A stretch of DNA of 64,000 bases from Tubulanus polymorphus (Eukaryota > Animalia > Nemertea). Location: NCBI RefSeq assembly GCF_964204645.1, contig NC_134034.1, positions 8,754,962-8,818,961 on the forward strand. The letters are read 5' to 3'. Of this stretch, positions 4,989-30,000 are shown one piece after another; position 1 is the stretch's first letter, and each line of letters starts with the position of its first letter. A program made the position numbers and the translations under genes. Below the pieces are notes generated by a model. The model searched no databases, was not told where the DNA came from, and saw only the letters and a program-made list of their open reading frames with translations.

Positions 4989-5001
4989 AAACCAAACTCT
5001 C
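4937..5001 (+). promoter_or_regulatory. -1 programmed ribosomal frameshift signal (G GGA AAC plus predicted H-type pseudoknot)
   Basis: Heptamer 4937-4943 is in X XXY YYZ phase with gag, and the -1 frame is open into pol. Stem 1 is CTGGCT/AGCCAG; stem 2 is GAGAGT (4963-4968)/ACTCTC (4996-5001). Confidence 0.8.
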
Positions 5002-5014
5002 ATCGCCAACCCTC

Positions 5015-8000
5015 TTGAATGAACGAGTTACTGTAAGCGCGATCAGCAACACGGTATCCAGCATAATCATCAGCGGAAAAATCGACAATGTACAAACCAA
5101 ATTTTTAATCGATACTGGTGCATGTGTTTCAGTTCTGAGTGAAGACGTGTTCGAGAAATTACACCCAGCATCGCAGGAGAATCTAGAAGAATCGAATTTA
5201 CAGCTATACAGTATCAATAATTCCCCTCTGAAAACATACGGTAAACTTGAGGTCGGAGTCGAGATTTTCGGCGAGGTCATGCCCTGGTCGTTCGCGGTAG
5301 CTGATATCGAAGATGAAGCCGTCTTAGGTTTAGATTTTCTTTCACACTACGACTGCCAGATTCACCCGGCCAGGCAAAGTATCACGTGTCATGGTGAGCA
5401 AATCATCTACGGAAAGAAATGTCAGCTAGATAAGAACAATACTCACGTCAGAAGCCGTCAGCGAGTCGTTATCCCCCCTTTTAGCGAAAAAGTGCTGGAA
5501 GGAACGACTGATGTACAACACCACTCCGGGAAGTGGGCTATGATAGAACCGTCTGAGTTTAGCCACAAACATCGATTTCTGACAGCGAGAAGTCTCGTCG
5601 ACACCGAAAAAATATGGTTACCCACCAGAGTTTTAAATCCTACACCACACAAGATTACGGTTTACAAGGGGACGACTCTTGGCTATTTGAGACCCGCATC
5701 TAGAGTAGAATCCAGTAATGTGAGAGCCACGCATACTCCCAGCCCTCCAAGCGGAGAGACTCCCGAATTTTTTAGAGATCTCGTCCAGAGAAGCACGAAA
5801 GACTTACAGCCAGACGAAGCATCTCAGGTCGAAAAGTTAATTTTAGAGTATCGAGACATCTTTGCTCGGTCCGACGCAGATTTAGGGGTAGCCCCGGGAA
5901 TTACGCACGATATACACACAGGGGATGCTAAGCCGGTTAGACAGAAGGCTCGACGCTTACCACCGGCAAGACAAGAGGTAGCCAGTCACCTAGTCAAAGA
6001 GATGCTAGATCGCGGGGTGGTTGAACCGTCAACTTCACCGTGGGCTAGTCCGATAGTTCTTGTGTCGAAGAAGGACGGGGGGATTAGATTTTGTGTAGAT
6101 TATCGGCGGGTGAATGACGTCACTATGAAAGATGCTTATCCCCTACCTAGAATTGATGACTCTATCCGTTCCCTTTCTGGCTCTCGATATTTTTGTACTA
6201 TGGATCTCGCATCTGGTTATTGGCAGGTCGAGCTGTCCGAATCTGCAAGAGAGAAATCCGCGTTTGTCATGAGAGATGGTCTATTTCAATTTCGCAAGAT
6301 GCCTTTTGGGTTGTGCAATAGTGGCGCGACGTTCGAAAGACTCATGGAACAGGTTCTCTGTGGCCTGCAGTATGAGATTTGCTTAGTCTATTTAGATGAT
6401 ATCATAGTATTCGGAAAGAATTTTGAAGAGACTTTGGGCAATCTACACCAAGTATTCGAAAGGCTTAGAAGGTTCGATCTAAAACTCAAACCCAAGAAGT
6501 GCCACTTCTTTGAGAAATCGGTTGCGTTTTTAGGACATGTAGTCTCAGAGGATGGCGTATCGTGCGACCCAGGTAAAATCGAATCAATTAAGACTTGGCC
6601 TGTACCTCGATGTCAAACTGACGTAAGATCATTTTTGGGTTTAGCATCTTACTACCGGAGTTTTTGCCGAGATTTCGCATCGACGGCGAAACCACTCCAC
6701 CGATTAACCGAGAAGGGAAGGAAATTTGAATGGTCTGGAGAATGTCAGTCCGCTTTTGAGGAATTGAAGGACGCGCTCATGACAGCGCCCATACTGGCAT
6801 ATCCACTCCCGGATACCCAGTTTATCTTAGATACCGACGCTAGTGGGGTAGGCTTGGGGGCTGTTTTGTCACAAGTACACGATGGGGCTGAGAAAGTGAT
6901 CGCCTATGGCAGTCGCACCTTGTCAAAGCAAGAACGAAATTATTGCGTCACGAGACGGGAGTTATTGGCAGTGGTCACATACGTCAAGCATTTCAGACAT
7001 TATTTGTTAGGGAGAGAGTTTCTGCTCCGCACCGACCACGGTTCGCTACGCTGGCTCATGTCTTTTAAAGACCCAGAGGGACAGACGGCCCGGTGGATTA
7101 CACTTTTGTCAGAATACAACTTCAAGGTTCAACATCGTCCCGGCCGTCTTCACACTAACGCAGATGCTTTGAGTCGCAGGGAATGTCAACATTGCTTGAG
7201 GGCTTCTGAGAGGTATGAAACAATCGAGAGTCCATGCAGCCACATCAAGCGGGTGAGAGCTATCAGAGACTGTTCCACTGAATTATTGTGCGCGCCAAAA
7301 TGGTCGCCAACAGAACTAGGCCAAGCACAAGCAAGCGACCCTGATTTGAGATGGATTGTAGAGCGATATAAGTCCCAAGATCGACCAAGCTGGCAGGATG
7401 TCGTAAGTGAGGGCGCTACCAGCAAATTTCTAGCAACCCGGTGGGAACAATTAAAATTGGTCGAGGGCGTACTGTATATCACCAAGGAAAGAGAAGGGTT
7501 AGAACCGTCTGCGTTGTTAGTTTTGCCTAAAACTTACCGTCACGAAGTATTCATCGAGATTCATGCCTCTAGAACCGCCGGACACTTTGGCTACAAGAAA
7601 ACTCTCACTAGCATTCACCAAAGATATTTCTGGCCCGAAATTCGGGATGATGTCAAGCTCTGGTGTGCGACTTGTTACCTATGTGCCACCAGGAAGAGTC
7701 CACCTAGAAGTAATAAAGCAAAACTTAAAGACTATCGCGTTGGCCTACCTATGGAAAGAATAGCTTTAGATATTTTGGGGCCCCTACCCGAAACGAAAGC
7801 CGGGAACACAGTAATTTTAGTCGTCTCCGATTATTTTACTCGTTGGGTGGAGGCCTACCCTCTACCAAATCAGGAAGCCAAGACTATAGCAGCAACACTC
7901 GTCCGAGAATTCATAAGTAGATTTGGTGTAGCGAGACAATTTCACTCTGATCAAGGGTCTAATTTCCAGTCAAAATTGATGACCGAAATTTGCGGCATGC

Positions 8001-8722
8001 TAGAAATGCGTAAGACTAGAACTACCGCCTATCACCCGCAGTCCGATGGATTAGTTGAGCGATACAATCGCACCCTGTTGAATGGGCTCGCCATGGTTGT
8101 GAATAAAAACCAGGACGACTGGGACGAGCAGCTACCATTTTTAACGATGGCGTACCGAGCGTCAACACATGATTCAACTGGATTTTCTCCAAACTATTTA
8201 ATGCTAGGCCGGGATATAAACTTACCTATAGATATTCTCTCGGGAACTCCCCATCCTTCGATACAGCTCCCAGTTGAGACGTACGCAACGGAACTGAAGG
8301 AACGCCTTACTTTCGCTTTTTCTCACACCCGAAAGAACTTAGCGCTTCGTGCTAGAAGAAATAAAAGACATTATGATACTCGTAGTCACGGAACGAATTA
8401 CAAAGTCGGGGAACGGGTATGGCTTTTCCGACCTGTCACGCCTGGCATGAAGTCATCAAAGCTGGCCTGTCATTGGGTAGGCCCATGTGAGATTTTCAAG
8501 ATAATAAACGACGTAGTATATACTATAGCGCTTCCTAATTCGAACAAGCGTATGACCGTGCATTTCGACCGACTGAAACCCTACCTTGAGCCAACCGCAA
8601 CTGACCTGAGGACTCCTGACTATCCAGAGAAATACTCAGACGAAATCAAAAGCGACGATTTTAGAACCACTTTTTTCGGGCGTACATCGAGACCACCTGA
8701 TAGATATGGCGACTGGTGCTAG
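5015..8722 (+). CDS. pol: Gypsy Pol (protease, RT, RNase H, integrase), intact, in -1 frame to gag
   Basis: LIDTGA protease; YLDD RT; TDAS...RELLA...TDH RNase H; HHCC zinc finger, DDE core and GPY/F-like integrase. 1235 aa uninterrupted. Confidence 0.98.
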   Translation: MNERVTVSAISNTVSSIIISGKIDNVQTKFLIDTGACVSVLSEDVFEKLHPASQENLEESNLQLYSINNSPLKTYGKLEVGVEIFGEVMPWSFAVADIEDEAVLGLDFLSHYDCQIHPARQSITCHGEQIIYGKKCQLDKNNTHVRSRQRVVIPPFSEKVLEGTTDVQHHSGKWAMIEPSEFSHKHRFLTARSLVDTEKIWLPTRVLNPTPHKITVYKGTTLGYLRPASRVESSNVRATHTPSPPSGETPEFFRDLVQRSTKDLQPDEASQVEKLILEYRDIFARSDADLGVAPGITHDIHTGDAKPVRQKARRLPPARQEVASHLVKEMLDRGVVEPSTSPWASPIVLVSKKDGGIRFCVDYRRVNDVTMKDAYPLPRIDDSIRSLSGSRYFCTMDLASGYWQVELSESAREKSAFVMRDGLFQFRKMPFGLCNSGATFERLMEQVLCGLQYEICLVYLDDIIVFGKNFEETLGNLHQVFERLRRFDLKLKPKKCHFFEKSVAFLGHVVSEDGVSCDPGKIESIKTWPVPRCQTDVRSFLGLASYYRSFCRDFASTAKPLHRLTEKGRKFEWSGECQSAFEELKDALMTAPILAYPLPDTQFILDTDASGVGLGAVLSQVHDGAEKVIAYGSRTLSKQERNYCVTRRELLAVVTYVKHFRHYLLGREFLLRTDHGSLRWLMSFKDPEGQTARWITLLSEYNFKVQHRPGRLHTNADALSRRECQHCLRASERYETIESPCSHIKRVRAIRDCSTELLCAPKWSPTELGQAQASDPDLRWIVERYKSQDRPSWQDVVSEGATSKFLATRWEQLKLVEGVLYITKEREGLEPSALLVLPKTYRHEVFIEIHASRTAGHFGYKKTLTSIHQRYFWPEIRDDVKLWCATCYLCATRKSPPRSNKAKLKDYRVGLPMERIALDILGPLPETKAGNTVILVVSDYFTRWVEAYPLPNQEAKTIAATLVREFISRFGVARQFHSDQGSNFQSKLMTEICGMLEMRKTRTTAYHPQSDGLVERYNRTLLNGLAMVVNKNQDDWDEQLPFLTMAYRASTHDSTGFSPNYLMLGRDINLPIDILSGTPHPSIQLPVETYATELKERLTFAFSHTRKNLALRARRNKRHYDTRSHGTNYKVGERVWLFRPVTPGMKSSKLACHWVGPCEIFKIINDVVYTIALPNSNKRMTVHFDRLKPYLEPTATDLRTPDYPEKYSDEIKSDDFRTTFFGRTSRPPDRYGDWC

Positions 8723-8781
8723 TCCAGATGTCATCTGCCATCGTAATTTTCATGTTTTTTTTTTATCCTTCTATTTTATAG

Positions 8782-10003
8782 GGATAAAACGACCAAGGTT
8801 AAGTGTATTTATTGTGCGCGTAGAGTCGACAAGGAAAACGTTCACGCGCATAATAGGTATTGCGAAGGCCGGACCCGCGAGGGGAAAGTCTTCGAGTGTG
8901 AAAAGTGCGGTAAACAGTTCGCTACCAAACTGAAGGCCCGTGGGCACGTAAAGTACCATGATGAGAGGGTGCGTATCCTCGAGGTCGCGGAAGATTCATG
9001 GGACCGAGACCCGCCTGCACATGTCCTATCCGCGTCAAACGTTACCTCTACTGTGAGCGCGGTGTCCGCCAAAAGAAAATTTCGACGTGACGAGCAGCGG
9101 CGTAAGCGCGCAGAAGAATCGAAAGCGAGATTGGATCGACAGCGGGAGCGAGAAGTGATCGACGAGACGGCAGAGCAGTTAGCGGCTCAAATCAATAAGA
9201 TATTAGAAGAAGATGAGCCGGTCACTGGCGACGCTCGAACGGTCCACTTTGGTACGCCATCCCATACCGCTACTTCAACTAGAGAACAAGAGATGGACGT
9301 CACTCCCGTCAGCTGTCAATCGGAAGGGAGATCGGCTTCCGACGTCGTCACCCGAATCATGAAAGAGATGTCGGGCACCATAGATGAGGTTTATCCGCCT
9401 TCGATCGTCACAGAGAAATTCCCAGCCGCCATCAGCGATGATCTGCCGACTTCTGCAGGCGATAAATTACCAACCGTCGTCGAGAGCCTGCCAATCGAGC
9501 CGCCTACTACTGCTATGAAGACACCAGTAATTCAGTCTCCGACTTCCGTCGTCAAGTTGTCAACGGAGTCGCTGCCAGCAGTTGCGCAAGAATCCTCGTC
9601 CGAGCCGTCAGTCGAGATAGAAAAAGATAAGTCGAAGCTGGAAGATGTCATAGTCGACGAGTCATCAGAGAGTTGCCAGGCCAACGACGCGGGTTCAGCA
9701 TTGTGCGAACAAATGGTCCTGCTACACAGTCATCCTGTTCCTGGTCGCAATGCGTATAAATATTTCGGTTCTCCATGCGACAGAGCAGTATGCAACCAGT
9801 GCGTTGTCGAATCCTTGAGGTTCAAGATTCGGTGGCCGACTCCAGAGTTCGTTCGACATGTGGAGGTGACGCGACCTACGGCATTCGGGATGCTACACAG
9901 CCACCCTACCGCGGCCGGAGATGTAGAAATCTATGGGTTCAGCAACGAACCAGTAACATGCGCGTTGTGTCTGATCGACCAGAAGGTGTTTGGCATCGTA
10001 TGA
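8782..10003 (+). CDS. Gypsy ORF3, probably spliced: two N-terminal zinc fingers, coiled coil, two C-terminal HSHP...CxxC repeats
   Basis: The frame of ORF 8969-10003 stays open back to a strong acceptor (poly-T...TATTTTATAG/8782). The extension reads CIYC..HAHNRYC and FECEKCGKQFATKLKARGHVKYH. Confidence 0.7.
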
Positions 10004-10069: not shown

Positions 10070-10315
10070 TGTGGCGAAAATGGACCCTGTTTCTCTTTAA
10101 CACCTCTAGGCTCTGGTTCATTTTTGTTTCAGCACCTCATCCTTTCCTCCGATATCTCCGGGTGGGGCGATTTTATTTGTATATCGAGAACATAAAGTAT
10201 ATTTAAGATGTAAGAGATTGATCCTTCCTATCTCGCCTTCGGGTTGGATAAGATCATCTTATCCAACCCGAAGGAAACAAATTAATTATTCGCGTTAACT
10301 TACGTACGATCGTCT

Positions 10316-10398
10316 GGCCGAGTTTGATTTTCGGCCGAGTTTGATTTTCGGCCGAGTTTGATTTTTCGGCCGAGTTTGACTTTTCGGCCGAGTTTGAT
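10316..10398. repeat. Five tandem 17-18 bp units GGCCGAGTTTGATTTT(T)C in the LTR
   Basis: Directly visible. Confidence 0.9.
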
Positions 10399-11232
10399 GT
10401 CGCCGTTTATGACTATCTTCTAGTTAAACTTTTATCGGCCGACTGAGAGCGTCACCGATCAAAATATTTCGTCGAGCAAGCTTGTGTACATATTCGTTAT
10501 CTACCCGCCGGGTGCTTCGATTTTTTAGATTATTTACTTGCCGACTTGATTCGCTCTCGGTCGGGCGATTTAAATGTAAATAAATGTATATATATATATA
10601 ACATAATCCGAGCGATGATTTGAGATCGTCGTTAGCACCTTTCGAGTCTCGTACTGTACGCCCGAATGAGACATGCATTTTTGACGCGACCACGACGCGA
10701 GACTTTTTCGAGACGCGCCGCGAACTAAGAGACTTTAAAGATATGCTGTTAATTTTATTGACTTAGTGACATTAAATTTGAGAGTCCACGGACTCTTATC
10801 TTATGACGATTTATATAAGTCTTATATCTTCGTCTTTTCTGAACGAGGAGAGGAGTTCCGCCGCTATTTTTCATAATGGTGCGGTTTCTGACATTTTCTC
10901 AATTTCCGGAATCATTTAGAAATTTCCGGAAAAATCTAAGGAGGGGTCTTACAATTTAAACAAATAATTCCAGAATTTTCCGGAAAATTCTAGAAATCTC
11001 ATTATCGCAGGGGGGTCAAATGGAATTCCGAAAAAAAATAAATTCCGGATTTTTCTGGAAATTTCCGGAAATCTCATTCCAAAAATCGTGTACAGTGAAT
11101 AATGTTATAAGGATTTTGATCCGTTACCACGGAAATTAACTAATTTATTTAGGGAACAGTCATTTGTTGCGTAGTAACACAACGACTTTTATCATCGAAC
11201 ATAAAAAGCTGATCCCATTCAATCATTTCAAC

Positions 11233-14200
11233 ATGGAATCTAGATTAGCTTATTTAAATAAATGTTGGGAGAAAGAAATACGCTGGAATGTTTTCCCAAC
11301 GAAGCTGGAAGAGGTAAGTAAACTTTAGCCAACCATATCAAATACTTAAGGCCTGCATTTAGCAACAGAATTAATTCGTAATTCATGCACCTTTTCCATA
11401 ACATATGCTATTTCCTTGCATCGTATGGATATTTAGCTCAATGGCTATGTATGCCGCACTATTGTCTACATTATGCAGTTGGAATAGGTCTATTTAATGA
11501 ATATGTAGTGGAAGTCGTTAACCATTTCACCGTTTGAAATGACGTAAATGTGTCCCTGTAGAGGCCTCTTATTTGTCTGTTGATACCAACACAGAGTCCG
11601 CCTGTATTACCCGTCGCGTCAAAGAGATTACCATTATTTCATACAAAATTGTTCTTCGGTTTTCTAGTTAGGCTAAGCCTATTTCATAACAACAATAATT
11701 TAAATCGCGGAAATAGTCATCATTAATATCGTCAACATGGTTGGCCTATAGATCTAAGGCTAGGTCTAGGCCTAATTATTGATTAGATTTTTTAGTCAGT
11801 AGACTTCCTAACAGCCCTGGTAACCTATAATTTTTCTCAAAACCATGCCCTGCATGACTCAAAAACACCCCGCTCCAGGAATTTGAAAATTTAACCCTTG
11901 TCATTGAATAGCTAGGATATCATTTACAAGAAATTGAGCAATAAATTTCTAGGGTATAAATCATAAAAAAATACATTTCTTCCATATTCAAGTCAATGAA
12001 TATTTAACCTTTTTCTCGTGAATTTAGGAATGCGGTTGAGCCCTAGGCCTAACCTCTGAACAAAGTATAACAGTATTAGAATAATATTTTATGAAGTTCA
12101 TTTCATTATAGGCCTAGGCCTATAACAAAAAGTAATTCTAAAAAAATGATTCTATTTTATTTTGTTGCAGGGTTGTAAATTTCTTGCAGATAAGATGAAC
12201 GTACCCGATTCGTCAGTACTTTTTGGGTTATTAGGCATATCATCATATATATGTAGTAACGCGATCGTCAAAGTTTCAAACACCATGTGGGAAGAACCGG
12301 CTATCAACTGGCTTGCCGTTTGCACCCCGACTGGGTCAGGGAAGTCAACAGTGTATAGGCTGATGAGTAAAGTACTAAAAATGATCAAAAACAAGGTGGA
12401 AGAGTCAAAACCAGACGTTAAATCTGTTATCTGGACATTAGACGATCAAAGTTTTGAAAAAATGGGCGCCTTGATGGCCGAAAACAACGGAAAAGCATTT
12501 GCCCTACAAGATGAATTAACAAATTTCTTAACGCAAATAAACATATACAGCGGAAGCAAGGGATTGTTAGAAACAAACGAATTTTCAAGAATATTACAAA
12601 TGTATAACGGTAATTCCTGGACAAGGAAAACGGGTAAGGTCATTTCTGGATTCATCCAAATAATTTAGGCCTATTCACTGCAGGTTCAATTCAATAAATA
12701 AGATAAACCATATAAAAGTTAAATCATACTTGTGTCCGGACCAGTCCAGATCGCGGCAACAAGTCAATAGTCGTCACCTCTCAGTGTCCAGGCCAGGGAA
12801 GCTGCCACCTATTAAAGTCATTGAACATAATCAAAACACATGAGCCCACTAGTAACCATTTGTCTATTGATATACAAAATTTACTAACAACAAGAACATT
12901 GGCTACGCCAATTTTGTAGACACCCACCGGTTGTATTGTTAGAAATTCTCATTTTTAACATAAACATGCTCAACATAAAAGATAATAATGCCGGTATCTA
13001 TTTTACAGTTGGTGAAAAAGCTAATTTTACAATGGAAACCACCGGCCTATCGATATTTAGGATGACACAGCCAAGTACGGCATATTCATTAATAACGGAG
13101 AAGCAAAATATTGACAAAGGTCTCACATCAAGATTTCTTTGGTTATTTCCTAAGCCGAAATTCAACACATTCGAAGATTTAAAGTGTACGGACGATGATA
13201 CCGGAGATGTCTTCATTGAGCGTTTATGTAAGTAAATAGATAGTTGCCGGTTTTATGAAATGTTGCTATGAGACGGGAAACGGGTCAGTTTAATGTTCTG
13301 ATTCGTGACTGATGTTGGTCACTTGTTCATCATCGCACAAAACGTGTTTTGGAGCGGAATATCGTGAATTGCTAAATCGTTGAAATAGTTCAATTAGTTT
13401 TCATTATATTTTTTGAAAATTCTAAATTAACTCTTTACTTGGAAGTGTATTTTTACGTATTGAAAGTAAAAAATTTGTTTTTTATTAAGATCATTATATG
13501 TTTTTATTCTAGTCCTAAAAAGTACCTCCTATATTTTTCAAATTTTTGATTTATAAATGTTTCACTAAATGTAGGCGAGGCATTCAGTAAACAAGTACTG
13601 CACAACGGTGACAATGATGTGACCTTGTACAGAATAGACACAGATACAGATAACGAAGTTTCGGACATTTATGATAAATTTCAACAAAAATTGAAATCGA
13701 ATTGTTTGGCCAACAACCTGCTAAGTGGTGAGTTTAAATCTAATAAATTATATTATAGTTATATTTTAGTAGCGAGGAGTACTTTCAAGTCTTCAGGTAT
13801 TTCCAGCTGTTGAAAACAAAGAAAATAACAAATTCACCTACTTGCAAATGATAATGTCATAGCAAATTAATCAGCAAGTGTTCTATACGATTTGAATATT
13901 GATCATACTTTACGGTTTAACATATTACCACAAAATCATTAAAGAAAAATTAATTTGATATTGCTTTCATATTAACAGCGCTTTACTCAAAAGGCAAGGG
14001 ACAGGTACTTCGTCTTTGCCCAGCGATACAACTACTATTCAACATCTTCTATGACGGTGATGATGAACAGCTTGATCACGAGAGGAACACAATCAGATCA
14101 GAAGTGATCAGGGCTTCGGTAGAAATTGTTTCGCTATGCATTGACCATGTCGCGACTGTGGTGGGAATGGAAAATGATTCGCCGCCAGTCTTAATCCCGG

Positions 14201-15565
14201 ATGGTAAGATACGTTACTTAGATAAACGCAATAACAGTTCCTCACAAGTCACCTTGGACTTTTCTGAGTGATGTAACATTATGTCGACGATGCACTCGGG
14301 ACTACTCCACATGGACGGTCAAAAAATTTAAGACGTAGGCTACATCAAACCCTGGCTGTAGAAAAGGTACCTCGTCCTAATCGATAGAACTATTGACACT
14401 AACTTGCCTTATTGAGAATATGCTTATCCCGGGCAATCGGTCAATCGGATCCTGTAACAGTGTCCTGAACTTAAATCACGTTTGGCGTATACTGGCCTTC
14501 ATTCCGGAGTAGATTTTGTGTAATTGAAGAAGCGTAGTAGGTTGTACAAATTGAAGCTTCATTATTAAAAATGACTGTAAAACATACGATGGTAAATGAT
14601 TATCAATTATGAAAACGCACGTATTTGTTGTTTTTTTAAACTACTAGATTAATGGTAAAAGTGTAACTTTCACTAATAGATTATCAACCGGTAGAATAAT
14701 GTAAAATATGTTATATTTGTACAGGTATATAGGTATACAGGCTAGCCTTATCGGCTTTTGAATAAAAGCAAAAATTAATTTCGACAGTCATCCTAATATA
14801 ATGTCTTGATAAAAATAATTATGTTAGAATAATTATGTTTACGCGGAATTCCACGGTACCGCAACATAAAATGGGAGCTATAGGCCTACATGATAACTAG
14901 AGGGATATAAAGATGTGCATTTCCCGAGAAAAACCACTATTTTTCATTTTTGGTCTCATAATAGAAAGATTATAAGATTTTTAGATTGAGTTTTCCGGGA
15001 AAATCCAGATTTTGTTTTTGTGCTTTTCATTTGTACACGCATCGACTATTTCGTATACGTCAAACAATTATCTAAATATTGTTTTACTAAAGGTATCACC
15101 GAAACGAACCAACGACTCATGAAAATTGTCATATTAAATCAAGGGAGAGAGGTATTCATGAGTGCGATGCAAAAGAAGTCGGCATTCAAAGTAAATGGGG
15201 GGAAGAATAAGATTAAAGAAATATTCCAAATGCTTGAGAACCGAAATGCCGGCACCATAAACATTGCTACTGATAAGGTAGGCATTTTAAACAATTCTTA
15301 GTTCTAGGCAAAAAATATTCTTTCAGTTTGTCGCGTGATATACAAACACAATATATTTGTATACATGGGTCCATTAAAATATTTATGACCCTTTCATTCC
15401 TCTCTGTGCATATATATTGATATACAATTATGATTGATCTCTTTTCAGATAAGTTTTCTCAAAACTGAAAACATAGAAGATGAGATGTTAACTTCGTTGA
15501 AAGTGACAAGATCAGAGTTTGTTAACAGCTTGTCAGCATCAAAAGTGCCTTTGGAACAACAGTAA
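11233..15565 (+). CDS. Seven-exon DUF3987/YfjI-like P-loop NTPase, ~480 aa (exons 11233-11313, 12171-12633, 13009-13227, 13575-13727, 13979-14203, 15093-15277, 15449-15565)
   Basis: All junctions are GT-AG and phase-compatible, giving 1443 nt with no stop. Walker A PTGSGKS, Walker B ALQDE, LQMYNG..W.R.T, TQP, GLTSRFL and SK.KGQVLRL motifs match the DUF3987 pattern. Winged-helix-like C-terminus is inferred. Confidence 0.8.
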
Positions 15566-16198
15566 GTGTATCTGTTTATATATTTGCCCATCCGAATATA
15601 ATTACCGGTACACATTAGAATTTAAACTGAAGTAACTTATCCACTTACCATTTCTTGAAAATATCTCAAAAGTATATCCTTATTTACATCGTAACATTAC
15701 AATGGGAATATATATATTTTCATTGGAGCTATGATTTAAGTTTATATTCACATCTATTTTCGTGTCAACTACATCTTTAATCCCAGAGAAGACGTTTGAA
15801 ATTGGTTTTAGCGGGATTAGCTTTGTAACCCCCCCCCCCCCCCCCCTATTAGACAGTTTACAGTTCAATATTTCAGAAACTATAAGGAAATACTATATTC
15901 GGAAAAAGTAATGCCGGGTATTAACTCCTTCATTAATGTTGGGCTGAAATGAGACAAACATCAGCTAAAATAACCTATAATGAGCAAATCTCATTGCTGT
16001 GATTACAACATAACATAACATGTTACTAGTTCTGTATAATACAACATTTTTCTATCAAATTTCATGTCTCAAGCTTCAATAAAACGACCATTGGAATATG
16101 TAGCCAAAAGCTTTGAAAAATCTCCTCGTTTATACTAATATCTTTATCAGTTTAGAAAAGTAATAAACATACGGTGTGAAGCGCGTTTTACACATGTT

Positions 16199-19100
16199 TT
16201 ATACAAGTTTTAATCTTTTTTCAAGTCTCTCGTTAAAGTCATTATTAATCAAGTTGAAAAATAATTTCCTTTTATTCCTGGTCATGTATCTAGTTGCCGC
16301 TTTGTATCGATTCAATCGAACGAAACCCTGTTCGCAACTTTCTGTATTCGTGCCGGCGATATCTTGAAATGCATCTAAATTAGGATGGTATTTACATTGA
16401 GGCCCATCGAGAGGCATGCATGTAGGCTTCGTGTGTTTCACAACATGGAAAATATCCACCAAAAACTTGGTGTTCTCCAACAATTCGGATGCTTCAACAA
16501 CACCGTCTTTGGCTAGTCGGCACAAAAATGGATGCAACTCACAGCAACGATCATAACCGACGTATCTCAAGTAATCTTTATATCCATTTCTCACATATGT
16601 TTCATGTAAGAAAAGGAAAGCCTGTGTTATACTTTCATGCGAAAACATCTCAACCATTCTGACGACGATTCCACAAGGTTTTATCGCAGCAAACATACCG
16701 GCAGTAGTAGAGTAAAACTTATTCAATTTCTGTACTCTATCTTTGCATCCTAATTCAGCGACGGATTCATCCACAAGTAACATATTTCGCGCACGTTTAA
16801 CATCGTGTACATAATCTGTAAACAATATCGATTTCGTTACTATATGAATCGCAACGAAAGAAATAAAACCCTGTTTACAGGGTCAGAATCATTGTTTAAA
16901 GTAAATCCCTGACATTGACCATAACCATACTGGGGGTATAGTTAAACGTAGGGTCAGAGAGGGTCATAGGATCATAGGGTTGTTGTGTCAGGGAAGGTAA
17001 TAGGGTTATATTGTCAATAGCGTTGGAGCATAAGAGAGGGTTCTTGTGTTCGAGAGTGTCACATGTTCAGTATCATTACATGGTCAGTGAAGTCATAGGA
17101 TTAGTATTGTCATTAGAGGGTTACTAGAGGACTGAAATATTAAATATGTTCTTAGGTTGTATTGAATTAACCTTGAATTTATATTTATATACATGCAAAC
17201 ATTTAAATATATTCTTTAATAGTAACAGATTGTAATTAAAAATATAAATCAAAAACATCTTGAATTGTCGCTGACCCTATGAGTATAAACCTAGCGTTAA
17301 TTTTCATGTACCTTTGAGATATAATGGAATCCGCGTCTGTCTTTCAGGTCGTTTTGTATGGTCGTCTTTATTGGGTTTGTCTGTCAGCTTTTTCTCTTCC
17401 ATTGGTCTATGTTCGTTACAGAACCTATTGATATTAAGTAACTTTAAATTAACAGGTATACGTTTTGCTGATGTTTTCAATGATAGGGCAACCTAAATGT
17501 ACGAGCATGTTATAGCCTACGCCCGTAAATAAACTATCATCGAGAATTCATCGTAAGAGTTGAAGTGATCAGAGCTGACACCTACCTTGACGAGGGTTTG
17601 TGTTTCCCGCCATAAGAAGGGTCATTCTGACATGTTATGATTGTTCTGATTGAGTTTGTATCGTCAAAATGTACTTGGCTATCCGCTGCACACATTGCCC
17701 GATGAAGCTTTTCATTGCCATCGATAGTGACGTACCCCTCCCTACACCCCTTCGTTTCGCACACATGTTTAATCCACTTTCGTTCTTTTTCTTCAAATAC
17801 CTTTAATATAACGAGTACCGGACTGCTAAGCTTATTTTAAAATTAGATCGCAAAGAATCGCGTTATTGTCTGCGATTCTATATAAACAAAGCAACGAACT
17901 ATTTATTTCCCATTATATTAGAGGAGTGGTGTTTGGGGGTTAGGCTTTAGAGCGTTAGGTTTCATATGGTTAGGGTTTACGGGGTTAGGGGTTTAGTTTT
18001 TAAAGGGTTAAATTTTATAGATTTAGGTTTTAAAGGGTTTGGGTTTAGAGTGTTCAGGGGTTTAGTGTTTAGGTTTTAGGGGTTTAGGGGTTAGGGTTTA
18101 GGGGGTTAGGGTTTAGTGTTTAGAGGGTTAGGGTTAAGAGGGTTAGGGTTTAGGGGGTTTAGTGTTCAAAGGGTTAGAGAGAAATTAGAGGGTTCAGGGT
18201 TTAGAGAGTTAGAGGGTTAGGGTTTAGTGGTTTTTAGGGTTTAGGGTTTACGGGGTTAGGGTTTAGGGGGCTAGGGTTTAGGGGGTTAGGGTTTAGTGTT
18301 TAGAGGGTTAGGGTTTAGTGTTAAGAGGGTTAGTGTTCAGAGGGTTAGTGTTTAGAGGGTTAAGGTTTAGTGTTTAAAGGGTTAGGGTTTACGGGGTTAG
18401 GTTTTAGAGGGTTAGGGTTTAGGGGGCTAGGGTTTAGTGTTAAGAGGGTTAGGGTTTAGTGTTCAGAGGGTAAGTGTTTAGAGGGTTAGGGTTTAGTGTT
18501 TAGAGGTTTAGGTTTAAGAGGGTTAGGGTTTTGGGGGCTAGGATTTAGTGTTTAGAGGGTTAGGGTTGAATGATTAGAGGGTTAGGGTTTAGTGTTTAGA
18601 GGTTTAGGTTTTAGAGGGTTAGGTTTTAGGGGGCTAGGGTTTAGTGTTTAAAGGGTTAGGTTTTAGTGATTAGAGGGTTAGGGTTTAGTGTTTAGAGGTT
18701 TAGTGTTTATAGGGTTTAGAGGGTTAGGGTTTACGGGGTTAGGTTTTAGAGGGTTAGGGTTTAGGGTTTACGGGGTTAGGGGGTTAGGGTTAGGGTTTAG
18801 TGATTAGAGGGTTAGGGTTTAGGGGGCTAGGGCTTAGGGGGCTAGGGTTTAGTGTTCAGGGATTAGAGAGTTAGATTTTAGCGGATTTTAGTGTTCAGAG
18901 GGTTAGGGTTTAGGGGGTTAGGGTTTAGTGTTTAGCGGGTTAGGTTTCAATGGGGGTTTAGGGATAAGGTTTTAGAGAGAATTTAGAGGGTTTAGTGTTT
19001 ATAGGGTTAGGTTTTAGAGGGTTTAGGGTTTACAGGGTTAGGTTTTAGAGGTTTAGGGTTTACGGGATTAGGGGTTTAGGTTTTAGAGGGTTAGGTTTTA

Positions 19101-21055
19101 GGGGGCTAGGGTTTAGTGTTTAGAGGGTTAGGGTTTAGTGATTAGAGGGTTAGGGTTTAGTGTTTAGAGGTTTAGGTTTTAGAGGGTTAGGGTTTAGAGG
19201 CTAGGGTTTAGTGTTTAGAGGGTTAGGGTTTAGTGATTAGAGGGTTAGGGTTTAGGGGTTTAGGTTTTAGATGGTTAGGGTTTAGTGTTTAGCGGGTTAG
19301 GTTTCAATGGGGGTTTAGGGATAAGGTTTTAGAGAGAATTTAGAGGGTTCAGTGTTTATAGGGTTAGGTTTTAGAGGGTTTAGGGTTTCCGGGGTTAGGT
19401 TTTAGAGGGTTAGGGTTTAGGGTTTACGGGGTTAGGGGTTTAGGTTTTAGAGGGTTAGGGTTTAGGGGCCTAAGGTTTAGGGGACTAGGGTTTAGTGTTA
19501 AGAGGGTTAGGGTTTAGTGTTTAGAGGTTTAGGTTTTAGAGGGTTAGGGTTTAGGGGGCTAGGGTTTAGTGTTTAGAGGGTTAGGGTTGAGTGATTAGAG
19601 GGTTAAGGTTTAGGGGTAAGTGTGTAGGGGGTTAGTGTTTAGTGTTTAGAGGGTAGGGGTTTACGTGGTTAAGTGCTTAGGGTTCAGTGTTTATAGGGTT
19701 AGGTTTTAGAGGTTTAGTATTTAGAGGGTTAGGGTTTAGTGTTTATAGGGTTAGGTTTTAGAGGGTTTGGGTTTAGGGTTTACGGGGTTAGGTTTTAGAG
19801 GGTTAGGGTTTAGGGGGCTAGGGCTTAGGGGGCTAGGGTTTAGTGTTCAGGGATTAGAGAGTTAGATTTTAGCGGGTTTTAGTGTTCAGAGGGTTAGGGT
19901 TTAGGGGGTTAGGGTTTAGTGTTTAGCGGGTTAGGTTTCAATGGGGGTTTAGGGATAAGGTTTTAGAGAGAATTTAGAGGGTTTAGTGTTTAGAGAGTTA
20001 CGGTTAGGTTTATTTTGGTGGGTGTTTATGCTTGAGAGTACCATAGCTTATTAGGTTAGGGTTTAGATGGTTAGAATCCTAGTTCGTTCATGTTATGTGG
20101 GTTTCTTATAAGTATATGTAATGTTAACATGGACTCAATGTGAAATGTAGCATGATATCAGTAGCCTATATCTTTCTTGTCAACATTGAGGAACAATTTT
20201 CAAAGACTCACCGGCCACGCTTGTTTGCAAATTGCATCTAAATCGATGTGTCCATTCTTTAAGTATTTGAAATTTGATATTGGCGTCTTCAGGTTTGGGT
20301 AGTTCAGTTTTGATTCCCTAGTTATTCTGTACAAAAACCACGCTTCTTCGAGTCTGAGTTCATTCAGGTACCAATTTATCGAATCATCTTGACCATCACT
20401 TGTAGGAGTACGCGAAAAGACCGATGAACAGTGCAGTCTTGTTTTGTTCGCATTTTCGTGTTCTTCGTTGTAGGCGTCCGCGAGCGCTTTGAAAGAGGCC
20501 CCGAAATGATTTATCGAGACGGAAACATGTTCAAGATAATCAATTGAAAACGCGGTTTGAGATGTTGATAGAAAATAGGTTTCGTTTGGATTTTCATAAT
20601 CCAGAAAACGAAGCCGCTATGTGAACTCCGGTTTTCGTAAATACATGTGGAAAAGACGGTTCATTTCTCAAAGTTATTTTTCGATCGCAAAACAAACACA
20701 TCTGTAACGGCGGCATTAGCACGATTGGTTTAAATCCATCTCTTCTGGATGACACAGTCCCATAAATTATATCTTTGTGAATAGTCTCCATCCTAAGTAT
20801 ATCCGGATATTGTTGACTAATGACCCCATAAAGATCACGGCAGCACATTTCATTTTTTTCGAATGTCCTAACAGATGAAAAGCGACTACTGTTTGCTACC
20901 ATTATATACGTTCTATTCGTCTCATCGTTTGAAATGTCCTCAGAAGCTCCAAGATATGTACAAAAATGCTTCCATCGATTTGGCATACATTTAGGGAAAA
21001 GCTCTGATGCTTTCAAAAAAGAACACAGTTCTCCGAGACGTAAATAAAACGCCAT
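16199..21055 (-). pseudogene. Spliced KDZ (Kyakuja/Dileera/Zisupton-like) transposase with CxC5/CxC6-like domains (exons 21055-20212, 17800-17586, 17424-17312, 16815-16199); frameshift/deletion near 20597
   Basis: Motifs TIDGNEK..R..C, C...FC..H, G.FAAIKPCG, ES, GYDRCC, LVDIFH..KH...C and NTESCEQ.F..LN. Exon phases are compatible. Exon 1 switches frame after AASFSG and resumes YENPNETYFLSTSQTAF...SF.ALADAYN. Confidence 0.8.
17925..20075 (+). repeat. ~2.1-kb degenerate telomere-like (TTAGGG/TTTAGGG/TTAGAGGG/TTTAGTG) minisatellite inside transposase intron 1
   Basis: Directly visible, with longer internal blocks repeated (e.g. TTTCAATGGGGGTTTAGGGATAAGG three times). Confidence 0.95.
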
Positions 21056-21109
21056 TTTATCAATTTATATTCACACAAAACGGTAAAACTTTGTTATGGT
21101 ATCCAGGTG

Positions 21110-21910
21110 ACCATTTATTCTGGAACGATCCGGAAATTTCTGGAAAAGCAATTCTAATTTATTCTGGAACGATCCGGAAATTCTGGAAAAATAATTCTGA
21201 TTTTTCCGGAATTCCGCGGTACCCCCCCCCCTCCGTGCCGATCAGCTTTCTGGATAGATCCGGAAATTTCTGGAAAAGCAATTCTAATTTATTCTGGAAC
21301 GATCCGGAAATTTCTGGAAAAATAATTCTGATTTTTCCGGAATTCCGCGGTACCCCCCCCCCCTCCGTGCCGGTCAGCTTTCTGGATAGATCCGGAAATT
21401 TCTGGAAAAGCAATTCTAATTTATTCTGGAACGATCCGGAAATTTCTGGAAAAATAATTCTGATTTTTCCGGAATTCCGCGGTACCCCCCCCCCCCTCCG
21501 TGCCGGTCAGCTTTCTGGATAGATCCGGAAATTTCTGGAAAAGCAATTCTAATTTATTCTGGAACGATCCGGAAATTTCTGGAAAAATAATTCTGATTTT
21601 TCCGGAATTCCGCGGTACCCCCCCCCCCGAGACGTAAATAAAACGCCATTTTATCAATTTATATTCACACAAAACGGTAAAACTTTGTTATGGTATCCAG
21701 GTGACCATTTATTCTGGAACAATCCGGAAATTTCTGGAAAAGCAATTCTAATTTATTCTGGAACGATCCGGAGATTTCTGGAAAAATAATTCCGATTTTC
21801 CGGAATTCCGCGGCATCCCCTCCTCCGTGCCGTTACGAGATCAGCTTTCTGGATAGATCCGGAAATTTCTGGAAAAGCAATTCTAATTTATTCTGGAACG
21901 ATCCGGAAAT
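21110..21910. repeat. Subterminal tandem array (~132-bp unit rich in TTCCGGAA/TTCTGGAA), including a duplication of the transposase start region
   Basis: Unit recurs at ~21229, 21361 and 21494. 21034-21230 is repeated at ~21627-21830. Confidence 0.9.
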
Positions 21911-22654
21911 AGTCAGAAAAAACGATAGTAAAGTATGAAAAATGTCAGAAACCGCACCAATCTCCTATTTTTCACCTCAGTGCCAATCTATTATTATTCG
22001 TCTTTATGAGAGGACCAGTTCGATCAGGGACGTGTCAGCAGTAGTAAGATGGAGACCATCAATCGAGGATCCGAACCCGCAGTCCTTTATTGACTGATGG
22101 CCTTCATCCGGGGGTAGTCATGACAGAGTGTCATACGTAGAGAACGGTAGATGTTGGAGAGAACTAGGTTCGAACCCGAGCGAAATCCTGGCCAGGTAGT
22201 CGCCTACTTGGATGCTGAGCCCTGATCATGGAATGAGAAGGATGAATATTTATTTGACGATAATTTAGATAAGAATTTATATCTTTTCCCTGAGGAGGAA
22301 TTACTTCCCCCAATATTTTCGTATCACCCGATTATATTGTTTCAGGGCGAACCCTAGTAGCAAACGCCTATTTTACTTATCCAACCCTATAAAGAAACAC
22401 GCTACCCAGGAGAGAAACGCTACACCATCTTAACGCTCTCGTCGCTGTAATAGTATGTCTATCTATTAATTGATGAGACCTGTTTTTCTGGGATATTTTG
22501 CTTACTTTTTGGGGAACATACCTCATTTATGTCTTAACAGAATGCCAAAAATCGCGGACAACAACTGAATATCCGATATATTTCCAGTTCTGTACCAATT
22601 AGATGGATTGGCAAAAAGACTCCTTAAGTCCAGTTGAATGAGAGAGAAAATCCT

Positions 22655-25785: not shown

Positions 25786-26306
25786 ATCATAGTCCTGCGA
25801 TCAACGGTTCTCCTTGAATCGCGTTCACAAGCTCATGCGGACGGACGAACGGACGGACGGACGGAAGCGGATACCAAGTCCCCCGCTCGCGGCCCATGCC
25901 GCGCGGGGGACAAAAAGAGTCATAATCGCAGCATCGTACAGGACACATCGTTTTCTTTTCGTTATTCGTCTTTCGTATCAAATTCAATCCTAAGGATATC
26001 GTGGTGGTGGACAATCGCCCCCACAAGAAGCGCGGTTACCCAGTGCCACTTGCGACCCATGCGGATAATCACCGAATCCTCGCTTCTCTCAGTGGCCCTG
26101 CCAGTAATCCCATTTTATTACGCATTCAAATCAATGAGAAAATTAGATCTGAAGTAATTGTTTCTGCCTACTTCCCGTCTGTGTTACTAAATACACGATT
26201 GTAAATCATATTGAAGCAGAATATGTATATTGACACATAACCCATAAATTGCATCATTCATAAAATGCAAATATCTAAGGCTGGTCGTAAAGCCCCCTGG
26301 GGCTAA
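25786..26306. mobile_element. Helentron/HINE-like fragments
   Basis: (GGAC)n microsatellite plus a GTCCCC...GGGGAC hairpin ending AAAAA at ~25916. 26190-26305 is homologous (inverted) to 30038-30155. Confidence 0.55.
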
Positions 26307-26460
26307 CGTTGATATATACATAAATTTAGAATTTATAAAATGATCATTCCAATCAAAGTCTCAACTATGATTTCTATGAACTTTGTACTTTTGATCATGT
26401 CTTACCTATCAAAAAATTGTAAGCTGTTACTAACAGTCAGTGGGAATGTTATGTAGTGTA

Positions 26461-26582
26461 AGTAATAGGGAATATGTTGTTTCATACCAAAGGTCGAAAG
26501 GTCGAAAAATAAATTCTCGCACACTCGAATTTATTTTTCGACCTTTCAACCTTTGATACGAAACAACATATTCCCTATTACT
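26461..26582. repeat. ~120-bp near-perfect palindrome at the left edge of the Polinton-like region
   Basis: AGTAATAGGGAATATGTTGTTTC...GAAACAACATATTCCCTATTACT, arms ~56 bp. Confidence 0.9.
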
Positions 26583-26639
26583 CTTAAATTATTTATATAT
26601 ATGAATGAAAAACTTCTAAAATCAATTTTAATAAAAAAA

Positions 26640-27007
26640 TTGGTATTAAAATTGAGAGTAGTAAACAAGTACACAGTGAGAATAACAAATCATTTCTAGA
26701 TAGAATAAAAGATATCACAAATGCTAAATCAGTAGATTATAAATTTAAGAAGTTAACAGAATTAACAATTCATAAGAAATATTTAATTACAAATATTGAT
26801 ACAGTTACTAACAAATATGGAGATAAATTAGTTATTCACTTAGAATATGAAGGATTAAAAGGAAATAAATATAAATTCAGAACATATTTACCAGATAGAT
26901 TTCATAGATTATCAAGTGAAGATTTCGAAGAATTATGTTCTGGTGATTTCTATTTCATATATAAAGGTAAGAATGAAAAAGGGCACCATGAAATAGATTT
27001 CGAATAA
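26640..27007 (+). pseudogene. Small Polinton-associated protein (possible OB-fold ssDNA-binding), start codon apparently lost
   Basis: Open frame not in the ORF track: ...FKKLTEL..HKKYLIT....NKYGDKLVIHL....RTYLPDRF...YKGK...IDFE*. The fold is an inference. Confidence 0.5.
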
Positions 27008-27045
27008 CTTCTAAAATCAATTTTAATAAAAAATTGGATATCAAA

Positions 27046-30000
27046 ATGGAAGCAAATAAGTACTACTGTTCAACATGTAAAATAGATATAGATAAATCTC
27101 AAAAAGCAAGACATAATAAAACTAAAACACATTTAGAGAATAAATTGAAATTAGAATATAAAGATGATATATTAGAAACTAAATTAGATGAATTAAAGAA
27201 TGAAAAAGAAACATACAAATGTGACACATGTAATCAATCATTCAGTAACAAAAGATATTATAAAGAACATTTAAAATCTAAAAGTCATATTAGAAATATG
27301 AATAATGATATCTTAGGTGAAGATTATTTTGATAACGATAATGAGAAGAAACAGAAGACAATTAAAAGAATAAAAAATAAAATAAACAATAAAAGGCCAT
27401 ACATGGAAGATGTAAGAGATTACATTAATTCATTAGATAATAAAAAAGAAATAGAAATAACCGAAGCATTTAAAAGCGATATTGTACCAGCTGCTATTGA
27501 ATTTAAATTTCATAAAGGTAAAACATTAGAAGAAAATAAAAAACATTTAGAAAATATGAAAAGTATTATAAAAATAATTACTGGTGTTGAATACCCTAAG
27601 ATTAGTATATCAGTTAAAGTAAAATTTTTAAAATCTATTAACAACATATAGATGATAAATTAGATAAATGTTATAATGAAATAAAAAGTAAAATAGAAGA
27701 AAAATATTTTGAAGGATCTGGTTTAATATTCGATGAAATAATATTTATGACTTTACATGTTTATAACACAAAATATACTAAGTTAACTAAATCAAAACCA
27801 ATAGATGAAAATAATTTATCATATTATAAAGATGATAATATAAATGGATCAAGTTATATCAAATTACCATTTAAAACTAATGCTGTTTTAAATGTACAAA
27901 ATTTTGATGATAAATGTTTTCTATGGACAATTATAAGTTCTTTACATCCAACATAAGATATTACACATAGTTTTAGATTAACAAATTATAAACCATTTGA
28001 AAATAATTATAAGATAGATAATTATCCTGTTAGAATTAAAAATATCCCAAAAATAGAAAGAGATAATAATTTAAAGATAAATGTATTTGATTTTATCAAA
28101 TTACCAAGAAAAAAAAGGTAACAATATAAAACATTAAAAGAAAAAGAATCGACTTATTTTTCAAATCAGAAAATGATTATACTCGTAAAATATATCTATG
28201 TAGAAAATGTTTACATAAATTCAGTAATGAAAGTGCATTATTAAATCATAAACAATTATGTGAAAATCATGATTATTGTAAAATAGTTTTACCAAATGAA
28301 AAATATAAGATATTAGAATTCAAAAAAATATGATTACAAGAATAAAGTGCCATATGTAATACATGGAGATTTTGAATCATTAAATAAGGAATTAACTGAT
28401 CAAGATAGAAAAGAAATATATCATAAAAGAAAGAAATTAAATTCTGAAAATGATGTAATTGATTATTCAGATCCTCTAATAACAAATACTATTAAAAAAA
28501 TTCATCAAAGAGCTGCAGCTTTTGGATTATATATTAAATCTGATTATCCAGAACTAATTAAAAAAAAATATTATCATTATAGAAATGAAAATGTTATCAA
28601 TCTTTTTTGTGACTTATTAATTGAATATGAAATAAAATTTAATAAATTGTTAAATAAAAATAAAGAAATAATTATGACAGAAGAAGATAAAGAAGAATTT
28701 GAGTTTGCAGATAAATTTTACTATTGTGAAAAGATATTTAATTTTAAAGATAAAAAAGTTAGAGACCATGATCATTTGAATGGAAAGTTTAGAGGTGCAG
28801 CGCATGAGAATTGTAACTTACATGCTAAGAAAATCAATTTTGTTCCTGTAATATTTCATAATCAATCAGGGTATGATGCTAATTTATTTATCAAACAGCT
28901 ATGTCATAAAATAGAAGAAATCATTGATGAAATAGAGAGAGTAAATTCAAATAGATCAAAAGATAAAATACCAACATATAAATTTAAAATGTAAGCTAAA
29001 ACATCTGAGAATTATATATCTTTCCAATTTGGGTGTCTAAGATTTATAGATTCATATAGATTTTTAAGTAGTTCATTAGATAATTTATCAAAATCATTAG
29101 TTGATGATGAATTAAAAATATTGAAACAACATTATCCAAATAATGATGATTTTCAATTAATGAGATATAAAGGAGCAATTTCATATTCATTTTATAAATC
29201 ACATAATGATTTCAATATAACTGAATTATTAAAAGAACAATTCTATGATGAATTAAAAAATGAATATGTTAAAGATGAAGTCTATAATAGAACAGTGAAT
29301 ATTTGGAATCACTTCGGAATGAAAAATCATGGACAATTAGTAGATTTATATCTAAATTCAGATGTATTATTATTAACTGATATATTTGAAAGGTTTAGAG
29401 ATGTAAATCTAAAATATTTTAATATTGATCCATGTCATTGTTATTCGAGCCCAGGATTGGCTCGGATGGTGGTTTAAAATTTACAGATATAAGAATGGAT
29501 TTGTTAACAAATATAGATCAATTATCATTATTTGAAAAATCAATAAGAGGAGGACTTTCGGGTGTTTTAGGTGATAGATATTTCAATGTAAATGATAACC
29601 CTGGATATAAGTTATTATATATAGATGCAAATAATCTATATGGTTGGGCAGTGATGGAACCACAGCCTTATGGAGTATTTGAAATAAGTGAAGTTTTACA
29701 GTATGAAAATAATGATAAATTTGATTGGAAGAAAATAATTCTAGATATTTCGGATGATTCAGACACTGGTAACTTTTTTGTTGTAGATTTAGAATATCCT
29801 GAAGATTAGAATCTAGAAATTAGATAATATCCTGAAAATTTAAATGTAAAAATCTAGCATACTGTCCCGAACATAAAACTGTTATTCACGAAGAATTATC
29901 AAATTATCAAAAAAGAATTAAACCTGAAAATCATATTCATACAGAAAAGTTAATGGTAACTCAGGAAGATAAATATAATTATGTAGTACATTATAGAATG

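Follow-up and report, generated by a model that had tools for sequence, protein, structure and literature searches.

The stretch considered here, a window of 64,000 nucleotides from the nemertean Tubulanus polymorphus (assembly GCF_964204645.1, contig NC_134034.1, positions 8,754,962 to 8,818,961 of the forward strand; window coordinates count from its first letter), contains at 10872–21964 what is, in all likelihood, a young multi-copy cut-and-paste transposon of the KDZ (Kyakuja-Dileera-Zisupton) type, with an accompanying DUF3987 helicase gene and a telomere-like array that in two sister copies is the site of a large cargo. The element belongs to a known superfamily; its new features are the accompanying helicase and the sister copies that bear a virus-like genome. 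Going further, we tentatively propose, with somewhat more doubt than confidence, a marine-invertebrate KDZ/Zisupton family defined by a dedicated DUF3987 helicase, the array of which in Tubulanus is the dock of a hitherto unknown large DNA virus-like element that entered two copies by recombination.

Genome-wide searches, here and below, covered the 268-Mb T. polymorphus assembly, the contigs of which are labeled C1, C2 and so on. The element measures 11,093 bp between constant termini, these being CATAAT followed by the terminal inverted repeat (TIR) on the left (10872–10897, plus strand) and the TIR followed by AATCTC on the right (21939–21964, minus strand), both defined by copy comparison. 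The perfect 20-bp TIRs described in an initial annotation, made from the letters of the window, hold up: the arms at 10877–10897 and 21939–21959 are 100% complementary over 21 nucleotides, and the full TIR is an imperfect repeat of 26 bp (23 of 26 positions complementary) around the perfect 20-bp core GGTGCGGTTTCTGACATTTT. This core has 24 matches in the genome at up to two mismatches, 12 of them exact, against none for the reversed control. The flanks of every core match were inspected, and the well-preserved copies carry CATAAT before and AATCTC after the core, whichever way they are oriented and although their loci are unrelated, with CATAAC in place of CATAAT in a copy on C1; homology between copies begins exactly at the element termini. 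Since both hexamers are constant at unrelated loci, these six plus six bases, AAT included, are element sequence, and the GG...CC ends assigned initially have to be moved outward by as much.

Directly outside these termini the window copy has an 8-bp target site duplication (TSD), CTATTTTT, the left copy of which (10864–10871, in long terminal repeat (LTR) sequence) is identical to the right one (21965–21972). It is one of five paired copies with perfect 8-bp duplications, the others being C1:8508614–8512220 (ACCAATCT), C2:16474269–16484342 (CAATAAAC), C6:11432206–11435597 (AATAGTGT) and C8:11116150–11117541 (GTATGTAT), while in the pair of ends that bounds a giant copy on C3 the duplication matches at 7 of 8 positions. 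In agreement with the insertion into an LTR noted at the outset, the element interrupts a 1.14-kb repeat unit placed after a Ty3/gypsy gag-pol region, that is, a 3′ LTR, and the joined window flanks align unbroken through the junction with eight other loci (repeat unit up to 1142 bp, 94–97% identity). The initial annotation had taken AAT for a 3-bp TSD and had named an empty LTR site that does not reduce to a single AAT as evidence against itself. The predicted empty site with a single CTATTTTT finds six exact genomic matches, and eight at up to three mismatches, whereas the site with a single AAT finds none. An undescribed class with GG...CC ends and a 3-bp AAT duplication, distinct from Zisupton, would fit the AAT that flanks the 20-bp core on both sides in the window, but with AAT being element sequence at unrelated loci, with five perfect 8-bp pairs and with this outcome at the empty site, it is refuted, and we give it next to no weight. 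EnSpm/CACTA and PIF/Harbinger, both 3-bp duplication classes, were excluded on the grounds of the 8-bp duplication and of the AAT site without matches. The literature gives 8 bp as the duplication length of Zisupton and of Cryptococcus KDZ elements (PMC12730594, PMC11343200), and together with the KDZ domain described below this length makes the element a KDZ/Zisupton-type transposon and not a new 3-bp class. Of the new KDZ family with a dedicated ATPase that had been suggested, the KDZ assignment, the defined ends and the DUF3987 second gene thus stand; the match to no known family, which had rested on the 3-bp TSD and GG...CC ends, does not. The correction to the 8-bp class matters for curation of the repeat library of the Tubulanus genome.

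The subterminal arrays reported earlier are borne out as well. The motif TTCCGGAA occurs nine times in the window, in all nine cases subterminally in the element, against 1.14 occurrences expected by chance. Four (10904–11070) lie within the left subterminal repeats (10898–11090), which are conserved in all copies including those of 1.4 kb, and five (21204–21805) within the right subterminal repeats (21118–21938), which comprise a 132-bp unit repeated 3.9 times and shorter units. The subterminal repeats are probably the sites bound by the transposase.

The interior holds two convergent genes, as had been seen, with KDZ on the minus and DUF3987 on the plus strand. On the minus strand, the open frames of the transposase extend from ~21064 to 16202. 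The exon with the catalytic domain, the frame at 16202–16882, matches the KDZ domain PF18758 in Pfam (E 2e-11, 44.5 bits at a cut-off of 26.6) and is present in five family copies. Further open frames of this gene (16899–17836) are found at 16899–17066 and, rich in Cys, at 17585–17836, the latter with a weak tblastn match adjoining a CxC5 exon in locus L061. Between these downstream exons and exon 1 lies a degenerate, telomere-like, G-rich array of 2 kb (17937–19935, plus strand; TTAGGG and TTTAGGG variants), which is thus intronic and is present in all family copies. Exon 1 (20203–21064) corresponds to the CxC5 zinc cluster region and is broken in the window, where 83 bp present in all other copies are missing at ~20600 and the frame is shifted. 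The pieces of the window exon 1 yield no CxC5 match in Pfam, while the C3 copy reads through the 83 bp in an open frame (ECRHCVNKKLLYHPQYFTMNGMKDERYY) and its exon 1 (263 amino acids) matches CxC5 PF18718 with an E-value of 1.8e-11. An exon-by-exon Pfam search gave no SWIM domain on the exons searched. As the deletion shifts the frame in the CxC5 region, the window copy is not autonomous, and the word complete, used of it initially, no longer applies; it would move only with transposase supplied by sister copies.

On the plus strand, the gene for the DUF3987 protein, of the MCM-like AAA+ kind, was mapped by tblastn with the RefSeq paralogue P0003 to 11233–15562 and has seven exons (11233–11313, 12171–12633, 13009–13227, 13575–13727, 13979–14203, 15093–15277 and 15449–15529/15562), with an optional last exon at 16067–16135 in one RefSeq model. 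Its frame is open and intact and agrees with P0003 in 467 of 469 amino acids, and the RefSeq protein XP_074641217.1 of T. polymorphus (469 amino acids) is 97% identical to the window NTPase exon. In Pfam, DUF3987 (PF13148) is matched by the plus frames at 12150–12665 (E 4.4e-11) and 12888–13232 (E 1e-4), and by P0003 with an E-value of 9.5e-29 (101 bits against a cut-off of 27) over profile positions 5–362 of 364 in two stretches; P0003 has no Pfam match to the PriCT domain. The window translation contains a Walker A motif, TPTGSGKS, and a Walker B motif, ALQDE, and residues G82 and K85 of Walker A are nearly invariant in an alignment of 48 homologues. Contigs of run X4 join helicase exons at GT..AG boundaries (13227/13575, 13726/13978, 14202/15092 and 15275/15447), and therefore a member of the family is transcribed and spliced. 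The 2015 run X5 holds no sequence of the element.

An AlphaFold (AF2) model of the helicase, with a predicted local distance difference test score (pLDDT) of 76, was compared with known folds by VIA-align. MCM AAA+ cores come out best (Z 15.4, root-mean-square deviation 4.1 Å over 275 residues; Z 4.9 at rank 50), followed by MCM8/9, BrxL, RavA, ComM, the SCCmec Cch helicase and SaPI primase-helicases, with TnsC at Z 5.8. Foldseek places the same families at the top with weak E-values (best 1.4e-3), and the sequence profile searched against the PDB gave P-loop noise only. The resemblance of fold thus points to an AAA+ helicase of the MCM-like kind, its activity being a prediction. Among characterized relatives, AgaPH, a bacterial PriCT-DUF3987 protein, is an oligomeric 5′-3′ DNA helicase partnered with a primase-polymerase (PMC11724360), and in primase fusions of mobile elements DUF3987 takes the place of MCM, DnaB or RepA (PMC5862659). 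The Tubulanus protein resembles these in its full-length Pfam DUF3987 match with Walker A and B motifs, and differs from them in that its gene is an animal gene, contains introns and shows no PriCT domain in Pfam, in that the 11-kb element has no primase gene, and in that the partner is a DDE transposase rather than a primase-polymerase.

Both genes are found together in five copies of the family, namely the window copy, the copy at C2:16474269–16484342, a partial neighbor of the latter and two giant copies discussed below, while in the copies of 1.4–3.6 kb both ends with their subterminal repeats, a portion of exon 1 and the array remain. The partial copy on C2 (~16497700–16507773), 23 kb from the 10-kb copy, has the same flank and also an insertion of ~2.4 kb; the shared flank points to a local segmental duplication, not a second insertion. 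A second, different KDZ/DUF3987 pair is located on C4. Linkage of the two genes in other invertebrate genomes, a check that the initial annotation had suggested, was found in several assemblies. In Exaiptasia diaphana a 611-amino-acid DUF3987 homologue lies 3 kb from a 659-amino-acid CxC5+KDZ gene, head to head, and both are enclosed by an inverted repeat of 63 nucleotides, around which no target duplication was found. ENA assembly ERZ25072152 has a CxC5 exon and a DUF3987 exon ~200 bp apart, again head to head, with more transposase exons behind the former, and ENA assembly ERZ26859011 shows two copies with the head-to-head CxC5/KDZ-DUF3987 arrangement. At a locus in ENA assembly ERZ25070786 and at one in the coral Desmophyllum, the helicase stands alone within 10 kb. 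Within Tubulanus, moreover, DUF3987 has Merlin-type DDE frames (PF12762) as head-to-head neighbors at five loci, at distances of up to ~1.3 kb (DUF3987/Merlin positions C10:9077281/9078675, C6:12034657/12033402, C4:11674071/11672409, C7:18147617/18149630 and C6:23004470/23002979), and some of the DUF3987 frames next to Merlin are intronless and 467 amino acids long. The DUF3987 helicase repeatedly accompanies transposases of two unrelated superfamilies, KDZ and Merlin.

We picture the transposition cycle as follows. The transposase would bind the subterminal repeats and would cut and paste the element with cuts staggered by 8 bp. The helicase would have been kept as an accessory factor and would not be there by chance, given that the pairing recurs in cnidarian and other assemblies, and its task as a ring translocase may be to unwind or remodel the DNA of the transposon ends, or of the gap left by excision or insertion. 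The contrary view, that the DUF3987 gene is a passenger, selfish or host-derived, captured repeatedly (by KDZ and by Merlin elements) and serving its own spread or, for example, defense with no part in transposition, appears rather unlikely to us, though it keeps appreciable weight. It would explain why the gene lies so close to Merlin-type DDE genes at five loci, why it adjoins KDZ genes in two orientations and how short non-autonomous copies have spread without it, and fungal KDZ elements do bear unrelated extra open reading frames (ORFs) and TET/JBP genes (PMC11343200, PMC12730594). The pairing with CxC5/KDZ across at least two phyla, in four data sets and at 30–45% protein identity, argues on the other hand for long co-inheritance. 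That the helicase is intact and spliced in a copy with a broken transposase also speaks against a mere passenger, but carries little weight, the copies being too young.

Eukaryotic cut-and-paste transposons are commonly taken to need the transposase alone. In bacteria, the AAA+ proteins MuB, TnsC and IstB assist DDE transposases. The layout of two genes, a DDE transposase and an AAA+ ATPase, is what the present element has in common with the MuB, Tn7/CAST TnsC and IS21 IstB systems; it is set apart from them by a helicase fold far nearer to MCM (Z 15.4) than to TnsC (Z 5.8) and shows no sign of homology to them or of target selection. A helicase partner conserved with KDZ transposases in nemerteans and cnidarians, and present beside Merlin transposases as well, would if true be a eukaryotic counterpart of these bacterial transposase-plus-AAA+ systems.

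The Zisupton/KDZ group (Bohne et al. 2012; Iyer et al. 2014; "Zisupton" in Repbase) is the closest known system to the element. With published members, including Cryptococcus KDZ1-3 and KDZx1, it shares the KDZ DDE domain, an N-terminal CxC cluster, TIRs and the 8-bp TSD (PMC12730594, PMC9297572, PMC11343200), and further a multi-exon transposase, a size in the range of ~6–11 kb and the presence of extra ORFs. It differs in its zinc cluster, which is CxC5 and not the CxC4+SWIM of canonical Zisupton or the CxC1 of Cryptococcus KDZ1, in the telomere-like array within the transposase intron, and in its second gene, which encodes an MCM-like DUF3987 protein. In the KDZ literature consulted, the extra ORFs reported, those of fungal elements, are TET/JBP or domain-less ones only (PMC11343200, PMC12730594), and no paper with both "Zisupton" and "DUF3987" was present among the literature matches listed. 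The KDZ-DUF3987 pairing looks new to the literature.

Several observations weigh against the assignment as a whole or against parts of it. One degenerate, old copy on C6 has degraded ends and no CATAAT, and for the C2 pair of ends 160 kb apart no target duplication was seen in the flanks. Contigs of run X4 contain no canonical minus-strand joint, so that splicing and expression of the transposase are without read support; one non-canonical minus-strand joint in these contigs looks like a DNA variant. A role for the helicase in transposition is what we infer from its company. The helicase coding sequences differ between copies by 3–7 of 1407 bases, which makes the family very young and selection on the helicase within this genome not measurable. 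The orientation of the two genes is convergent in the Tubulanus element and divergent in other taxa, and the pairing of DUF3987 with Merlin transposases also allows for repeated capture of a useful or selfish gene. Finally, a curated Zisupton entry with a DUF3987 second gene may exist in Repbase or Dfam.

The two giant copies extend the family in another direction. One lies at C3:16020298–16180908 (ends 160,610 bp apart; loci L039–L055) and the other at C2:18032050–18193011 (160,961 bp apart); the former was examined over its whole sequence, the latter through 1.5 kb at each end and search matches. That lone ends on C2 and C3 had been paired by chance was considered and rejected, as the ends bound two copies of ~160 kb. 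At the ends of the C3 copy are the right part of the element (window 17559–21965) and its left part (10872–19467), each stopping in the telomere-like array, and between them lies a cargo of ~147.5 kb, its junctions on C3 falling at about 16,024,500 and 16,172,100. A 1.2-kb cargo probe has exactly two matches in the genome, one on C3 and one within the C2 pair, each at 100% identity, and homology between the two giant loci ends exactly at the element termini.

About 74% of the cargo is covered by intronless open frames of at least 130 amino acids, the largest of 2229, 2087 and 1703 amino acids. A DNA polymerase of family B, exonuclease domain included, is encoded by the 2229-residue frame (E 8e-16), and its nearest solved relatives are polymerases delta. 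On the minus strand of the C3 copy, a 746-amino-acid frame at L051:4772–7009 has a Walker A loop, YGPNWGKT, resembling that of superfamily 3 (SF3) helicases, and a frame at L051:7013–7750 weakly matches archaeo-eukaryotic primases of the C962R type (E 7.6e-4, below the cut-off); the two share a reading frame with one stop codon between them (L051:4772–7750). An envelope-like glycoprotein of 913 amino acids has a signal peptide, a conserved RKKR site and a C-terminal membrane anchor (its AF2 model, at pLDDT 33, is unusable), and the cargo further encodes two RING fingers, a bZIP protein, a galaxin-like protein and a tyrosine recombinase and contains Penelope-like retroelements. Relatives of the polymerase, the glycoprotein and two proteins of 1069 and 780 amino acids, at 29–47% identity, were found solely on a Joint Genome Institute (JGI) metagenome contig and on the contigs of one SRA run, the latter preserving the divergent order of the 780-residue/glycoprotein gene pair. 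No capsid, portal, terminase, packaging or pif-type gene was recognized in searches of ~97 ORF pieces against Pfam and 60 against PHROGs, two profile searches against the PDB, one protein-atlas search and two homologue searches, and a match to "Major_capside" at E 0.05 was set aside as too weak to be evidence. The designation virus-like is thus based on the dense packing of genes together with the replication module and an envelope-type protein.

The identity pattern bears on how the cargo came to lie in the element. Cargo C2 and cargo C3 show no difference in the 6.7 kb compared (interior probe, polymerase and glycoprotein each 100% identical), while the backbones of the giant copies have nine mismatches in 1.67 kb of end sequence and so are ~0.5% diverged; over a 3.4-kb gene region the C3 giant copy scores 6025 bits with the C2 giant copy, 6020 with the window copy and 6134 with itself. 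On C3, a stretch of 1856 bp of the array is present on both sides of the cargo as a direct duplication with 99.5% identity. As the backbones have diverged and the cargo is identical, two separate entries into resident copies are favored over a single transposition of a fused unit, and gene conversion may be an alternative to two separate entries. The likeliest way in would be homologous recombination between the array of the element and a matching one on the DNA that entered: a single crossover with a circular molecule bearing the array would yield the direct duplication, and the reverse crossover would restore the 11-kb element. The duplicated telomere-like array hints, in other words, at cargo entry and possibly at exit. 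Copies of Penelope-like elements (reverse transcriptase and GIY-YIG, 99.7–99.9% identical) abut the arrays at both cargo junctions (L039:4807–5734, L053:4124–5964 and L054:471–2312).

We consider it unlikely that the 160-kb forms are instead a composite, Teratorn-like unit moved by the KDZ transposase, with the 11-kb copies as its deletion derivatives. In favor of such a unit, the same structure of ~160.6 or 161.0 kb is found on two chromosomes with homology stopping at the termini, the C3 copy has the 7/8 duplication, and the direct array repeats flanking the cargo could delete it. A recent move of the whole unit should, however, have left backbone and cargo equally identical, whereas the cargo alone is free of differences and the giant backbones differ from one another as much as from the window copy (6025 vs 6020 bits); moreover, the C2 copy is without duplication, and the giant copies have their cargo within an intron of the transposase gene. 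Still less probable is an assembly artefact, in which a free or singly integrated genome would have been threaded into two transposon copies via the shared array. The identity of the cargo at both loci over everything compared, and the presence of related sequences on the small unplaced contigs C23, C30 and C76, would be as expected from such an error, but the array, at 2–3 kb, is shorter than typical long reads, which should span it, and both junctions carry specific sequence in the form of Penelope-like ends abutting the array.

With separate entry into two resident copies as the preferred reading, the element can be set beside two vertebrate systems. Teratorn of medaka, ~180 kb, is a piggyBac transposon fused with an alloherpesvirus (PMC5601938, PMC10175614), and like it the Tubulanus giant copies are units (here ~160 kb) within cut-and-paste TIRs with large DNA-virus-like genes at more than one locus. 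They differ in that the transposase is KDZ and not piggyBac, in that herpesvirus hallmarks (capsid, terminase) were not recognized in the cargo, and in that the cargo lies between duplicated halves of the array in a transposase intron, with an identity pattern suggestive of separate acquisitions. With the telomeric integration of human herpesvirus 6 (HHV-6; PMC10175614) and Marek's disease virus they share a large DNA genome flanked by TTAGGG-like arrays, recombination between which would give integration and excision, but the Tubulanus array is interstitial, degenerate and transposon-borne and does not form a chromosome end. The 160-kb copies would be the second natural case, and one in an invertebrate, of a large DNA-virus-like genome inside a DNA transposon. 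If the reading of separate entries is true, they would follow Teratorn as a second, mechanistically different kind of partnership between transposon and virus, the first from outside the vertebrates.

Sequences related to the cargo occur elsewhere in the assembly. Distant relatives at 32–33% identity reside on the small contigs C23 and C30: the unplaced positions C23:73458–76304, C30:66945–68786 and C76:7918–9387 comprise a polymerase relative (32%, in a 2272-amino-acid frame) and glycoprotein relatives (33% on C30, 23% on C76), which may represent a second virus-like element, integrated or free. Homologues of the cargo glycoprotein at 23–30% identity are present at ~47 loci as intronless frames of 800–900 amino acids (for example C12:6852259, C7:8823812 and C4:11495430) and may belong, as envelope genes, to endogenous retroelements or Maverick-like elements. 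Within the C3 cargo there are also dispersed repeats of 0.4–1.3 kb, 92–99.8% identical and one of them inverted (~32126–33771, 57381–57987, 118561–119859 and 122500–123834 in concatenated coordinates of the C3 copy), which are perhaps regions resembling origins or enhancers of a large DNA virus, or else miniature inverted-repeat transposable elements of the host.

As for the surroundings of the window copy, the interrupted Ty3/gypsy LTR retrotransposon occupies 3789–10003, with its 3′ LTR at 10182–10871 and, beyond the element, 21973–22424. It comprises a gag-like ORF with a zinc knuckle (3789–4988), upstream of the element, a pol ORF of 1235 amino acids (5015–8722) with protease, reverse transcriptase, RNase H and integrase in Ty3/gypsy order, and a third ORF of 344 amino acids that has no Pfam match. 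No 5′ LTR of this retrotransposon is found within the window, the nearest further LTR copy being 9.7 kb before the window start, and contig C17 has two copies of the interrupted repeat unit, 8.7 kb apart. Farther along, the composition profile of the window shows a very AT-rich stretch at 26000–38000 with a GC fraction of 0.20–0.28.

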